Positions 29,301 to 37,754 of a stretch of 64,000 nucleotides of DNA are shown here, one piece after another. This stretch comes from Trichosphaerium sp. ATCC 40318 (taxonomy: Eukaryota; Protista; Tubulinea): positions 82,040-146,039 of the forward strand of contig JALMLS010000196.1 in NCBI GenBank assembly GCA_038496445.1. Reading direction: 5' to 3'. The translations under genes and the position numbers were made by a program. How positions within the stretch are numbered: the stretch's first letter is position 1; every line of letters starts with the position of its first letter. Below the pieces are notes generated by a model. That model was not told the origin of the DNA and did not search any database. It saw only the letters and a program-made list of their open reading frames with translations.

Positions 29301-31056
29301 ATGGCGAAGACCTTCGTTGGCTTTCGCCAAGTTAGACACAGAAAACAAACAAAGAGCCCAAAATTAAGTAGAATACAGCAGTTTGACGCTATCGCCGATC
29401 AGTACGCGCGCTTCACGCCCTTGACCACTAAAGTGCATTTAGTTTAAACATAAAGGTTCTTGATGATTTTTACAACGTGACATGGCTTAATTTGGTCGAT
29501 GCAGGAGCAGGAGCGCTATTGAGACAGTAAGTAACTGATACGAATAGCTTCTAGGTAGTTAAAAAGTAACAAGCACATAGATTCCGTAATTCTACGTTCA
29601 GAGCGCTTAGTATATTGTACCCAGAACATGAGTGGAAACCATGGAAATTTACGTAAGTGACACTTGAAAAAAATTGATTGACATTTATTTCGTTTATAGA
29701 CACGCTCCACATAATCACTGGGAGTCCGTAGAGCATCAAGTTTCGTTTATTAATGATTATGCAAAACGTTACAATATTAAGACTTGTGATGGCTTTTACA
29801 CTGTCAGTTGGACTGACATAAATGAAAATGGAGGAGCTTCAGTGATACATAAGTACGTGTAGCTTTTTCTTTTGACACATTAGTAAAAATAAGGTTTATT
29901 TAATTTTGTTGCTAGATATAATTTTTCAATGTTGAGTATGTTGCGTGCGTTGTGCCCACACTATGACTGGCAAGCTTGGAAATTCGCGTATGTATATTAG
30001 ACGTTTCTAAGACCTGAGCTAAGTACAAATCAGGTCATCACGAATGTCACATTGGGGAGAGCGGTCTCGTCAACACTCCAAATTAAATGCAGTTGCTGCG
30101 TCTCTTGGTGTGAAAACTTTAGAAGATTGGTTCCTAGTTACAAAGGAAGACGTAATCGCATTAGGCGGTAGAGTAGTATTACAAGTGTACGTGCATTTAT
30201 TCGTTACATTGCGTAATTTCTTAAGGCATTCTGGCTCGTTAGAAGCCACATTGACAGCTCTTTTCCCAAAGTTTGAGTGGAAGCTTGGTAGATTTGCGTA
30301 CGTGACTATGACATGGTTGTAATGGCTCATCTATACACTAGTCGCAAACGACTACCATACGCCACGGTTGTAAAACGTAGTGTTTTTGATAGAGTAGCAA
30401 ACTCTTTAGGCATCACAACCCTCTCTGACTGGTATAACGTTCCCACAGATGCTGTATATAGCTCGGAGCTTAGAGGAATTATGAACACGTAAGCTTAGGA
30501 ATGGATATTACAATATACTGACAGCGTTTTATCCAGATACAAGTCTCTTTCTAAAGCCCTTATAGCTGTGTATCCGGAGCACAACTGGCACCGCTGGCAC
30601 TTTTGGTAAAAAGCTACAAAGCAGTTAGTATAATACTAACTAGTTTTTTGCTATAAAGGCGTCAGCATAGAGAAGCTTTACCAATCGGGTATTGGCACGA
30701 ACGTAAGAATCAGTTTGAGTTCTTGCGAAATATAGAAGCAACATACAGCGTCACTAAGGCGACATGGTACTGCAGTTTACCTTTTGTTGTTGAACAACCG
30801 CTCACTACTATATCAAGGCCTAGTGTCTCCATCCAACAGATTTGCAAGTTGGGCGGACACGGTATTCTGTCTTACTACCCTCATATACTATCACAGTACT
30901 ATCCGGAGGTCCCTTGGCGTTGGCAGGAGTTTTCCTCCGTCACAAAGAGATCAAACCAAAGGTAAACTAAACTACTCTAGTTTAATTGAACAAAAAACCT
31001 AAATTTCATACAGACACCTTACATCACGTGCCAAAGGGCTCTTTGCTGGAGCATAA
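29301..31056 (+). CDS. Tandem ~70-aa 'DWY' repeat protein (5 repeats), nuclease domain absent
   Basis: Repeats such as LGVKTLEDWFLVTKEDVIALGG..HSGSLEATLTALFPKFEWKLGRF and LGITTLSDWYNV..YKSLSKALIAVYPEHNWHRWHF; ends KRSNQRHLTSRAKGLFAGA*. Confidence 0.85.
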
Positions 31057-31475
31057 AACGTCCTTAACTGCAATTATTGCCAAGGAAACCTTTCTGACTC
31101 CCAAAAAGTCACACATCGATGTCTATCGTTTGTAGGCTGCGCAATGCAGATCCTAGTTTGTACTGTGCGGAGGACATATTTGTTCCGTAACGAAGGTGGT
31201 CTAACAATAGCGACAACAATCGCGATGAAAGCACACACCCCATAAAAAACCTGCCAGCAACTTGTCAGAGCGTTGTATGCGAATCCGGAATACCAGAGGA
31301 CATTTAATACACAAATCAGAGCCTATTAAAATGCACGCAAATTGGCACATTCGCACCGCCCACGTGCAGCCAGTACAGAAAAATTGTAGCTGTACGAAAA
31401 TTAATAAAAGTCAGTGCTTTTTTTTTTTCTTCTCTTTGTGATTTTTTTTAAGGAGTTCAAACCAAAGCAGCACCT

Positions 31476-33822
<2,347 letters not shown>

Positions 33823-34163
33823 AATCACACAAAATATTCAAAAAAAAAGTAGTGTGCTTTTTGTACAAAGGTGTTATGGTTTAGAATAAATGATTAAGTT
33901 GACGTATGACTGTTTTCTTTCGCTTTTGTGGACGTGGTGTTAAGGTACGTTGGTTAAGGTGCAATTCAAAACAAGGCGATAATGTCAGTGTTGAATTGTA
34001 CAGTGGTAGGTTTTTTTTATTTTCCCCTACAATAGTTTTTGCCGCTTTCTCGGATTTGGTGCGCATTCAGCTTGCATGCTTGCAAGGTACTGTTCATTTA
34101 AAGTAGTTAAGTCTCCATACTGCCTATAACAATGGATTAGGAGTACGGCCTAGATAAAAGTAC

Positions 34164-35056
34164 TCACTGAGAATTTTGTTGTTTTGCAGAAAAGAGTGTG
34201 AGCATGCGATCAATCTGTGGTCTAAAGGTACTCAATTTAAGCTGGTAGACTGACCTTGCCCTATTTTTTGTTGAACAAAATTAGCATCACATGATGTCGA
34301 ATTCCATCGTACCAAGTACGTTCATTGTGCCAATTCACTTGGTGTTCTGCAAGTAAATCTTGCATGTTAAAATTTCCTTCTCTGCGCACTACCCACTTCT
34401 ATAAGCGTTGTTAGTAAGATGTCGTTCATTAATGTATATTACATCAAAGTCCTCTGCTGTGTACTTCTTAGCATGCTCCGGTTTGGGTGGGAGAGCGACT
34501 TCAAGTGGCTTTGGTTTTGCTAAGGCAATCCCTCTCTGTTCGGTCATTTCGCTCTAGTGAACAATTACGAATTCGGAGGCCTAACTACCCAAATGCGTGC
34601 CTTTTCGTTTTCTGGTATGGTATGTCTGTCAGACGCCCACTCTCTCAGAAGAGCGTAAAACGATGCGTCCTTAGGCAAGTCCAAGTTTATTGCTCGTTTC
34701 CTCACCATAACTTCGCCACTGGGGCCACTTTTTAAGTGATTAGGTTGGTACCACAATTTGTGCAAACAATGACAAAAAAAATAAATACGAACCGTTGTGA
34801 CCGTTGCGGCGTCACTTTGGTAGCAGCGCTACGCAAAGGAGATGGTCTTGTCACTATTTTAGTAGGCGTAAAATGTTAGCTCATTCCGGTGTAAGGTTTC
34901 TGTTTGAAAAACAAGCGAACGAGCTATCGTACGTTCTCTTGTGTTGTTTTGGGCAGGATCAGGCATCTGATTATCGGTGTAGTATTCTAACATCTTTTCC
35001 GTCGGTTTTGGCGTGCGACTGCTACGTCGCCTTTCTAGGCGATCTCTTCTTGACAT
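34164..35056 (-). CDS. LIN37: LIN37-like (MuvB/DREAM complex subunit)
   Basis: RKRAINLDLPKDASFYALLREWASD resembles the LIN37 'R.VDL..F.....LY..CR.W' block; C-term DLLAEHQVNWHNERTW resembles the second LIN37 block. Confidence 0.6.
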
Positions 35057-35439
35057 GACGGGTACTTTCAGCTCCAGAAGGTTCGCGGTACGTGTTTTCA
35101 AATAGAAAGCTCTACTTTTCGAAACTAAGGTGTGTAAGTGCCGTTATGGATAGGGTAATAAACTGTGTGAACAGTAATAGATCACCTAATAGCAACTGTG
35201 GCGATTTCAGATACAAGCCATTACCACGAGATGAGGGTCCCGAAATGAGTTGGTGTTTGTGAGAGTAACCGTTTTGAGGCGCTAGTGCGTTTAAAACAAA
35301 AAGAAAGTAAAAGAACGTCTACATTTTCACACAACGACCAATTTTTACACTAAATGCCATAACTGTTTCGTTGCTTACGATAATGAACGCCCTATTTGCG
35401 ATAATGGTTACAGCGCACGGTTTAGCCTTCATTTAACCA

Positions 35440-37754
35440 ATGAATACCCTAACCCGCTCAAAGCTTATAGAAACGCTTAACGTGGTGTCACGGGGTAATG
35501 TTACGCGTATAACACCAAAATGTACGATTATTTTATTACATCTACTCTAACGCGTGTACAAGGTATGTACCGCGCTTACAAGCCATCTGTCAAGCATGAT
35601 GCCTTTACTTCACTGCAACAAGTGTTGAATAACTCTGTTTGCCCTAAACACCGCGTTTTTACAATATCAGATTGGCAACGCATCGATTCAAGAGGCATTA
35701 TGGGTTTTGACGCCCAGATTGACAGGGCATTGGAAGAGTGCGTGTGTCATTATCTTTAACCGCTTACTTACACCGTTGAATAACAGGAGAGAGTACTCTT
35801 TGTACAGTTTAGTTGGCTGGCTAATGCCTGAACACAAATTTCGAATAACTGACTTTTTGTACGTCATTTTTGTGTCAAATTTTTTGGGTCTGATCTCTTT
35901 CAGAGTCGTGTCCCATGGACATTGGACATCTCCCAAGCACCGAAGGACTGCCTTAAATGTAGTTGCACAGTCTAAGGGTGTGAAGGTACTAGAGGACTGG
36001 TACAACTTTACAGGCGTGGATATATTTCGACAAGGCTATGGCTCGCTAATTAATCGGTATTAACATCGGATGTTACCCTCTTTTAAACAATTGTATATGT
36101 AGGTATCAGTACTCCCTTTATGACCTTCTTGTTGCATCATTTCCTTTCTATGAATGGAATCAATTCAATTTTCGAGAGACATGGCTTTCACAACAGCATG
36201 CATGGCTAGATAAGGTTGGTAAGCGTCATGGTATTAAAACCTTATCAGGGTGGTATAATTTCAGTCGCGCAGAGGTATTTGATGTTGTAGATGCACCCAA
36301 GTTTTTGTATGTTCGCCTCTTTCTTCAGATAAATATTTACCCTTCAATGTCAGGTTCAAAAAAACGCCACGGCTTGCTGATTTATTGCGAAGAATCTATC
36401 CTAACTATGACTGGAAAGATTACTTATTCAAGATTGCAGCTATTGGGGCGCATGATGACACCACATTACTACGGGAACACTTTAATGACATTGCGCGAAC
36501 ATTAGGTGTTAAATGTTTGGACGATTGGTATCATATACAGGCTGCTCAAGTTTCTCAAGTTGCAAAACATAGTACATTAAAAAAGTGAGTAAGATTCGTT
36601 TAATGCTTTTATATATTAACACGGCATAGGTATTCTTTGTCACTTGTGAAGGCCCTCAAAGATATATACTCTGAAAAGGACTGGGAGGATTGGAGATTCG
36701 GGTACAAATAAGGATGGTGCTTCGAAGATAACCTCTTATTTAGTACTGGATCACATGGTTACTCTAATTTTATGCGAAGACATAAAATGACTCTTGAAAC
36801 AGCTGCTGAAGCTCTTGGATTAAAAATTGTAGATGATTGGCAACGTATTTCAACTACCCAATTTGGTGAGATGGCTCAACCTGTGTTAAATGCGTTTAAT
36901 AACTCGATGAGAAATGCGCTTACTGCAATATTCCCTGGCCACAAGTGGGATTTAAACATGCCGCTATACCCTCCTAATCACTGGGATATCCAGAGGCGAA
37001 GAGTCTCATTTTTGCGGTCTGTGGAGCAAAAGTTTAATCTCACCAATCCGGAAATGTGGTATGTTGATTTTTATTGACTGTCGTTCTTTCTTACAGTATT
37101 TAGGTATCGCGTGCCTGTTTCGGATATATTTAAAAATGCAAATGGATTACGTCGCCACTTTTTACACGACCTTGAAACATTGCATCCGAACTATGGATGG
37201 GCTTGGGAAAACTTTGGAAGACTAACAAAAAAGGCGACTCAGAAGTACTTTACCGTTGTCATTTGAGTTTCCTTAACCCACGTGCTAGGCGGCTAATAAA
37301 TGCTCTTCAAAGAATTTTACCGGGTGTTCTTATCGAAGAAGAACTCTACATTGGCACTGGAGTCAATGACGCGATTACTGTTGATGTGTTTTTACCACAA
37401 TTTAGTGTGGCCTTGGAGTATCAGGGTAACAAGAACTTTTAATGACAATTTTGCTGAGTACAATTAGGTGAACACCATTATCAAAGCACATTTACTTATG
37501 GTAATCCTGTAAGTGTGTATCAAGCCAGGGATGCAGAGAAAAGAGAGTATTGTGACAATGCTGGGATCACTCTTATTCCAATTCCTTATTGGTGGGACGG
37601 TAGCGCAGCTGAGCTGGCTTCTCGAATTGATGCCCATAGACCAGATTTAAACCTCAGCACCGAGAAGTTGATACCACGACAACCGCAGCTCGGGATTGTA
37701 GAACACAAGTTGCCATTCAAAGGCATGATGGTAACAGAAAGTGCAACAGTGTGA
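35440..37754 (+). CDS. Tandem 'DWY' repeat protein (6 repeats) with C-terminal PD-(D/E)xK (RAP/DUF559-like) nuclease domain
   Basis: Repeats GVKVLEDWYNF, GIKTLSGWYNF, GVKCLDDWYHI, GLKIVDDWQRI. C-term TVDVFLPQFSVALEYQGEHHY...RDAEKREYCDNAGITLIPIPYWWD. Confidence 0.88.

Follow-up and report, generated by a model that had tools for sequence, protein, structure and literature searches.

The question raised by this 64-kb stretch of the Trichosphaerium sp. ATCC 40318 genome (contig JALMLS010000196.1, positions 82,040 to 146,039 of the forward strand; hereafter, the window) is what two of its genes, g1 and g2, encode, and what proteins built from a repeated module, with a nuclease-like end in g2, may do in an amoeba. 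Our analysis indicates that g1 and g2 are nuclear, contain spliceosomal introns and belong to a large uncharacterised family made of tandem units of about 75 amino acids (aa), which are usually followed by a predicted Vsr-type nuclease. This family is real, large and undescribed, and its module lacks a dedicated Pfam model and a counterpart among solved structures and is absent from the literature searched; the general design, i.e., tandem binding modules joined to a Vsr/RAP-type nuclease, is already known. An earlier note on this DNA had recognised two paralogues with five and six tandem units, the second ending in a nuclease motif, and the spliced frames agree on both points with hidden Markov model (HMM) matches (E 1e-5 to 4e-21 for the units and 6e-37 for the spliced tail against the family tail HMM).

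In the window, the GC content is approximately 38% and open reading frames (ORFs) are short and broken. Three-frame translation of both gene ranges revealed that the repeat motif switches frame at short GT..AG intervals, after which the splice models were made by hand from the DNA. Removal of ten introns per gene (39–68 nt, with canonical GT..AG borders in 20 of 20) leaves an uninterrupted frame in each case, namely 11 exons encoding 422 aa with five tandem units for g1, and 11 exons encoding 613 aa with six tandem units and the C-terminal nuclease for g2. Note that the least certain part of the g1 model is intron 10 (30962-31013), which is unconfirmed and without which the ORF ends at 30965, and that of the g2 model is the first exon, the start codon, first exon and first intron being unconfirmed. 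Spliced contigs from public runs, one belonging to a run whose identity to the window is at least 99% and the other to runs at 95–99%, skip exactly the g2 introns 36057-36102 and 37426-37467; therefore, g2 is expressed and at least two of its junctions are correct, including the one that splits EYQG|EHHY. In runs X2 and X3, the spliced contigs are 95–99% identical to g2 and display three base differences (window 35955, 37679 and 37685), indicating that an orthologue is expressed in a close relative or another strain. The features of both genes, in window coordinates, are the following:

29301..31056, + strand: g1 gene, manual splice model; unit HMM matches span 29432-30962
29402-29442, 29527-29580, 29653-29699, 29853-29915, 29988-30033, + strand: g1 introns 1–5, GT..AG model
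30187-30225, 30298-30341, 30489-30536, 30606-30658, 30962-31013, + strand: g1 introns 6–10, GT..AG model
29301..30932, + strand: g1 unit array from the unit alignment, genomic coordinates with introns
29301-29650 (with leader), 29651-29985, 29986-30295, 30296-30603, 30604-30932, + strand: g1 units 1–5
35440..37754, + strand: g2 gene, splice model with two introns backed by spliced contigs
35495-35562, 35738-35786, 35859-35903, 36057-36102, 36307-36353, + strand: g2 introns 1–5, GT..AG model
36585-36629, 36702-36743, 37059-37103, 37245-37288, 37426-37467, + strand: g2 introns 6–10, GT..AG model
35440..37215, + strand: g2 unit array from the unit alignment and unit HMM
35440-35856 (leader and degenerate unit 1), 35857-36172, 36173-36429, + strand: g2 units 1–3
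36430-36699, 36700-36960, 36961-37215, + strand: g2 units 4–6
37216..37670, + strand: g2 linker and predicted Vsr-type PD-(D/E)xK nuclease domain, aa 464-586, family tail HMM E 6e-37
37671..37754, + strand: g2 C-terminal extension of 27 aa, then the stop codon, beyond the family tail profile

The units of g1 and g2 share the scaffold ..W...NQR.F....L....DWY.V.....GG..LL..Y..S....L...YP...W....F, as given by their alignment, and measure approximately 70–75 aa, except for g1 unit 5 (with an insertion of ~17 aa) and g2 unit 1 (with the leader), which reach 92–100 aa. A unit HMM rebuilt from units of other organisms gave significant matches in the window that are confined to g1 and g2, a result far beyond chance. 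The two proteins are only 24% identical, which rules out a recent g1/g2 duplication, and single units are 10–35% identical both within and between them; thus, the modules are old and individually diverged, as expected if they are individually specialised. The introns inside the arrays are all in phase 2 (18 of the 20 introns in total), and nearly all of them occupy two recurrent sites, one ~23 residues ahead of the end of a unit and the other in the codon that opens the following unit, both of which are common to g1 and g2. Since these sites are shared by proteins so distant in sequence, the introns are probably older than the paralogue split, or else two-exon unit blocks were duplicated. In addition, the proteins are basic, with isoelectric points of 9.8 (g1) and 9.1 (g2) and a family median of 9.3, and the net charge is about +2 per unit.

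How widespread this architecture is was addressed using one g2 exon (window 36745-37056) as phmmer query, which retrieved, among 1.84 billion cluster representatives, 1369 with E<=1e-3, of which 434 reached E<=1e-10. We examined closely 152 proteins (150 of the phmmer matches listed and two cluster members), of which 91 carry the nuclease tail, nearly always at the C-terminus; members that lack it, like g1, are common. The most frequent tandem period is 74–77 aa (about 75), units account for about three-quarters of each protein, and the number of repeats varies, with up to 18 matched stretches per phmmer match and up to 24 units per protein according to the unit HMM; the family consensus is approximately K.P.GYW...eNQR.Fld.la..Lgi..leDWY.V....i...GG..LL..Y..Sl...L...YPEh.W....F. 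The named amoebozoan sources are Cavostelium apophysatum and Echinamoeba exundans, the matches in the AlphaFold database (AFDB) include dictyostelid proteins, and the ESM Atlas clusters of the family list Evosea, Discosea and Tubulinea, with Nucleocytoviricota also among the taxa. In one metagenome assembly, megabase eukaryotic contigs contain several paralogues adjoining ordinary eukaryotic genes. The multi-paralogue amoebozoan family suggested in the earlier note therefore exists, and its statement that no functional description was known agrees with our literature search (DUF4046, DUF4379, RAP in Amoebozoa and amoebozoan mitochondrial proteomes), in which the family has no description at all.

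Some members depart from this amoebozoan pattern. On giant-virus-like contigs, members at L004:8001-9026 and L005:4719-6728 directly adjoin core genes, the viral neighbours being RNA polymerase Rpb2 and MutS, and an intein-carrying ribonucleotide reductase; such a placement beside core genes is typical for free-standing homing endonuclease genes. In a deltaproteobacterial metagenome-assembled genome, the member at L010:1681-3522 contains six 75-aa units (E 1e-18 to 1e-25 each) followed by the tail, and its flanking genes (a sigma-54 response regulator, a histidine kinase and a Schlafen/AlbA_2-HATPase_c_4 gene) indicate that it is truly bacterial. This six-unit member suggests that transfer between bacteria and amoebae is possible. 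Moreover, an ATP-dependent DNA-ligase domain (PF01068, KMDGIR motif) follows the nuclease in the Cavostelium proteins P0127 and P0198 and in one metagenomic protein. A metagenomic ORF of 1010 aa (P0164) holds two consecutive array-plus-nuclease blocks, with tails at 369-485 and 888-999, and corresponds either to two adjacent genes read through as a single ORF or to a genuine double enzyme.

Concerning the nature of the unit, structure prediction and Pfam scans were applied to homologues, with P0086 as the modelled protein, and to single exons and units rather than to the whole spliced g1 and g2 proteins. The AlphaFold2 model of P0086, a six-unit homologue of 602 aa with an 86-row alignment, reached a mean predicted local distance difference test score (pLDDT) of 90.4 and a predicted template modelling score (pTM) of 0.62, and displays a disordered leader of 35 residues, five helices per unit (one long and four short) and an alpha/beta tail. 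The fifth g2 unit (36745-36975), modelled with 147 aligned units, presents the same five helices (pLDDT 89.6). Hence the unit is a five-helix module of ~75 aa and not a helical hairpin like those of PPR/TALE proteins, to which the earlier note had likened the family while giving it a longer repeat of its own. No Pfam family covers the repeat in exon pieces, whole homologues or 147 single units, sequence-profile searches of the PDB with the full alignment, the unit or the tail gave no match, and the single unit has no match among Swiss-Prot models. A match of Myb_Rap1 to homologue P0002 (44 bits, with no single stretch) was rejected, as it sums matches to the YPEH.W..W.F segments, which are coil in the models.

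Structural comparisons provide some hints about the relatives of the unit. The whole model retrieved from the PDB with Foldseek only helical-repeat matches of low template-modelling (TM) score. In the ESM Atlas, the g2 unit superposes on amoebozoan clusters and on clusters named DUF4046 (PF13255) and, more weakly (TM ~0.5), on the HNH_repeat associated with homing endonucleases and on integrase N-domains. The domains that resemble the unit weakly in structure, namely TetR, RepB, the integrase N-domain and HNH_repeat, are helical and bind DNA. DUF4046 is a marginal relative of the unit. On the one hand, the Atlas superpositions give TM 0.60-0.69 over 67–70 residues with a root-mean-square deviation of 2.2-2.8, though for a short domain and between predictions on both sides, the AFDB matches include bacterial DUF4046 proteins, and some family members have precomputed weak PF13255 matches. 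On the other hand, sequence matches stay below the 22.8-bit cut-off (E 0.15 on P0160, and one of 147 units at E 0.009). DUF4046 has no known function and is not mentioned anywhere in the literature searched. Within the unit, the entropy of 913 units places the most variable positions on helices 1, 3, 4 and 5, where their i/i+4 spacing suggests that they lie on exposed faces, and positions with a restricted alphabet just before helix starts, which we read as N-caps. In these 913 units, no PPR/TALE-like pair of code positions, nor any small restricted set, stands out.

The tail of g2 reads ..VDVFLP..ALEYQG|EHHY..RDAEK..GITLIPIPYWWD, with an intron within EYQG|EHHY; the nuclease region is split by introns 37245-37288 and 37426-37467. 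Once spliced, it contains all the invariant residues of the family tail HMM. Invariance across the family is complete or almost complete at the D of DIFxP, E-Y-x-G, H, the D and K of RDxxK, and P-Y-W-W; the conserved residues present in g2 are Q, the D of VDVFLP, E-Y-Q-G, the H of EHHY, the D and K of RDAEK, and P-Y-W-W. In the window, the nuclease profile matches g2 alone. A relic nuclease downstream of g1 was ruled out, the tail HMM having no match there. In the P0086 model, the tail aligns over its whole length to the catalytic domain of I-Bth0305I (3r3p, Z 10.1), to Vsr (1cw0, Z 10.0), to a Toxoplasma mitoribosomal protein that we take to be RAP-type (Z 9.5), to the FASTKD4 RAP domain (Z 8.9) and to NGO0050 (3hrl, a putative endonuclease-like protein, Z 8.9); a Tetrahymena mitoribosomal protein scored Z 8.2. 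The predicted structure thus has a Vsr-type PD-(D/E)xK fold, as close to Vsr/I-Bth0305I as to RAP domains. The restriction-like fold expected in the earlier note is therefore recovered in the model, and its Vsr/DUF559/RAP-type assignment stands as far as structure is concerned, but not for the Pfam RAP family (PF08373), which had no match at E<=1 on the g2 exon pieces or ten homologous tails. The nearest Pfam family of the tail is DUF2726, with one homologue above the cut-off (26.6 versus 24.7 bits), four other homologous tails at E 0.0015-0.06 and the g2 exon piece at E 0.097, while DUF559 matches a few family members weakly. In addition, UniProt automatically names one AFDB relative 'RAP domain-containing protein (Fragment)', so some members are perhaps within reach of another profile.

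Is this nuclease still active? Vsr relies on a catalytic Asp, His and Asp (D51, H69 and D97) (PMC3239194, PMC11879112), to which, in our reading of the alignment, the D of DIFxP, the H of EYQGxxH and the D of RDxxK in the family would correspond; conservation at each of the three is complete or at least 90%, and g2 has all of them. FASTKD4, which is reported as inactive and non-catalytic, carries an Asn at the His position (PMC11879112). The retention of the His in the family suggests, in comparison, that catalysis is probably retained.

The leaders of the proteins were then considered as a possible indication of their destination. The first 28 residues of the g1 leader include eight K/R and neither D nor E, and the g2 leader is basic with one Glu; the earlier note had described both leaders as basic and acid-poor. 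In a test of presequence composition over residues 2–19, g1 passes and g2 fails, with its one Glu. At the family scale, 80 members starting with Met and having 17–89 residues ahead of the first unit were compared with the rest of the protein: their leaders are poorer in D/E (5.8% versus 11.6%) and richer in Arg (9.0% versus 4.8%) and S/T (17% versus 10.6%), and 41% of the 80 combine an absence of D/E with three or more K/R over residues 2–19, versus 4.6% of random internal windows. By composition, the family leaders look like mitochondrial presequences, many of them textbook-like, in line with the mitochondrial targeting proposed in the earlier note.

The nuclease itself extends well beyond the family. 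When prokaryotic genomes were scanned with a tail alignment of 12 rows, 382 relatives (loci) were identified in bacteria and archaea, in which, except for the one bacterial member, the tail is joined to other N-terminal regions; as an example, the archaeal/bacterial loci L008:4807-6312, L063:5218-6930 and L027:5344-6675 combine tandem DUF4379 with an EYQGxxH...PYWW nuclease. Similarly, the tail matches in BFVD come from phages and giant viruses and are homing or restriction endonucleases. The presence of the tail behind varied arrays across prokaryotes, phages and giant viruses emphasizes that the nuclease is a cassette combined with different tandem modules. Given how common this cassette is in bacteria, archaea, phages and giant viruses, together with the bacterial six-unit member, the family seems to derive from DNA enzymes resembling homing endonucleases and is not restricted to organelles. 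The DUF4379-array proteins of prokaryotes, phages and giant viruses resemble our family by the tandem array ahead of a C-terminal nuclease and by the tail itself (30–45% identical, with shared EYQGxxH and PYWW), whereas their module is a Cys-rich treble-clef zinc module of ~55 aa, unrelated to the 75-aa helical unit; they have no functional description in the literature searched. Comparison by hhalign of the unit profile with two other bacterial tail-bearing N-terminal regions, both without a Pfam family, gave no match.

Among characterised systems, FASTK, the apicomplexan/ciliate HPR-RAP and the algal OPR-RAP proteins combine helical repeats with a C-terminal RAP domain and act as organellar RNA factors. 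Our family resembles them by its presequence-like leader, its helical repeats, its C-terminal Vsr-like PD-(D/E)xK domain with an end of the hydrophobic-Pro-Tyr-x-x-Trp type, its structural matches to their tails and its organisation as multi-paralogue nuclear families; in contrast, the tail does not match the Pfam RAP model, the module of ~75 aa and five helices is not a helical hairpin of 37–40 aa nor FAST_1/FAST_2, the catalytic-type His replaced in FASTKD4 is kept, and the 75-aa-unit family has bacterial and viral relatives. Tandem small binding modules joined to one Vsr-like domain are also the organisation of I-Bth0305I, which has two NUMOD motifs (PMC3239194) and, with Vsr, provides the best structural matches of the tail and the same conserved Asp/His/Asp; DUF2726 nucleases are alike in being the best Pfam match of that tail. 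Unlike EDxHD homing endonuclease genes, g1 and g2 are nuclear and contain spliceosomal introns rather than being carried by an intron or intein, no mark of mobility appears in the surroundings examined, where a kinase gene adjoins, the modules of the family are not NUMODs and form much longer arrays (5–24 units), and the leaders resemble mitochondrial presequences. Finally, tandem individually diverged modules, variable array lengths and large paralogous families are shared with PPR, TALE and PUF proteins, and organelle-type leaders with PPR, whereas the five-helix unit of 75 aa differs from the helical hairpin of ~33–40 aa that forms a solenoid in PPR, TALE, OPR and HPR, and no pair of restricted specificity positions comparable to those of PPR, TALE and PUF is evident.

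Altogether, the explanation that we favour, tentatively and with less than even confidence, is that a mitochondrion-targeted array places a Vsr-type nuclease at specific nucleic-acid sites, the substrate being mitochondrial transcripts; import, nucleic-acid binding, specificity, catalysis and substrate are all parts that we infer. According to this scheme, (i) the presequence-like leader would bring the protein into the mitochondrion, (ii) the array of basic five-helix modules would lie along a specific stretch of nucleic acid and (iii) this binding would put the nuclease, with its kept Vsr-type Asp/His/Asp, at a defined site. On these residues and this positioning, we propose g2 as a site-specific endonuclease and g1, which has no nuclease, as a paralogue limited to binding, which would protect or mark a site or compete for it. 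Transcripts are only slightly favoured over mitochondrial DNA, by analogy with FASTK, HPR-RAP and OPR-RAP; the many diverged paralogues, the frequency of members that lack a nuclease and the reported absence of canonical RAP proteins from Amoebozoa point the same way. Indeed, a published survey detected no RAP proteins in Amoebozoa with Pfam (PMC8190603), which leaves room for an analogue.

Several observations weigh against this explanation. The g2 leader contains a Glu, and the first exon of g2 is unconfirmed. The single unit, compared with solved structures, gave at best E 4.7 with Foldseek and Z 4.4 with VIA, neither of which is significant, so the unit fold is not assignable, and nucleic-acid binding rests on charge and context. 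The same lack of a significant match to any nucleic-acid-binding domain, together with the reported inactivity of the Vsr-like domain of FASTKD4 (PMC11879112), would suit arrays acting as protein-protein scaffolds or structural proteins, with a non-catalytic binding domain as tail; we consider this very improbable, as the catalytic-type D, E, H, D and K are near-invariant across the family, the units are basic and some members are fused to a ligase. That ligase domain, with its KxDG motif in Cavostelium, points to DNA, and the nearest solved relatives of the nuclease are, by a small margin, DNA enzymes. These points, with the retained Vsr-aligned catalytic residues (PMC3239194), the homing or restriction endonuclease annotation of the prokaryotic, phage and giant-virus cassette relatives and the DNA-binding neighbours of the unit, argue for arrays that bind sites of mitochondrial DNA, where the nuclease would nick or cut for repair, recombination, replication or homing-like events and the ligase paralogues would reseal. 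Large organelle-targeted repeat families are mostly RNA factors (PPR, OPR, HPR, FASTK). We regard mitochondrial DNA as a serious though still doubtful candidate, nearly as likely as transcripts: it would be unusual for many diverged, apparently active and specific DNA nucleases to be directed at a single small organellar genome, members that lack the nuclease, like g1, are frequent, and the structural scores of RAP domains are nearly as high as those of the DNA enzymes.

The wide distribution of the nuclease cassette in prokaryotes, phages and giant viruses, as well as the bacterial genome with a six-unit member, further indicates that the architecture does not require an organelle. The proteins could then be selfish homing-endonuclease-like genes or antiviral DNA nucleases of the amoeba nucleus or cytoplasm, exchanged with giant viruses and bacteria, in agreement with the placement of members beside Rpb2 and MutS or an intein-bearing ribonucleotide reductase on giant-virus contigs, the listing of Nucleocytoviricota among the Atlas cluster taxa, the Schlafen/AlbA_2 neighbour of the bacterial member and the high divergence of the paralogues. 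We nevertheless find this unlikely: g1 and g2 lie among ordinary nuclear genes, have ten spliceosomal introns each at positions that they share although their products are only 24% identical, and are expressed, and no hallmark of mobile elements flanks them in the surroundings examined; moreover, many family leaders are presequence-like (Arg/Ser-rich and acid-free) and do not resemble nuclear localisation signals. A bolder version of the favoured mitochondrial explanation, in which the module is a modular sequence reader and the arrays form a repeat-programmed cut, or cut-and-rejoin, system for amoebozoan mitochondrial RNA or DNA, also appears improbable to us.

If the arrays do read sequence in a modular way, their use as targeting scaffolds that already carry a nuclease would be attractive. 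They would then constitute a fourth programmable protein scaffold beside TALE, PPR and PUF, naturally coupled to an apparently active nuclease. Independently of this, a module without its own Pfam model, solved structure or literature defines more than 1000 protein clusters, and, given the reported lack of RAP in Amoebozoa (PMC8190603), the family might supply the machinery for organellar processing or repair that is missing in this group, for which g1, g2 and their relatives provide concrete candidates. The family also links the eukaryotic repeat-plus-RAP organellar factors to the tandem-module-plus-Vsr genes of bacteria, phages and giant viruses, and this link to homing-endonuclease-like genes bears on the origin of RAP-type proteins. 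Note finally that, between g1 and g2, an exon at window 32419-32721 (+ strand) carries the protein-kinase ATP-binding motif GxGxFSVV...VAIK and, judging from this motif, is probably part of a CaMK-like Ser/Thr kinase gene.

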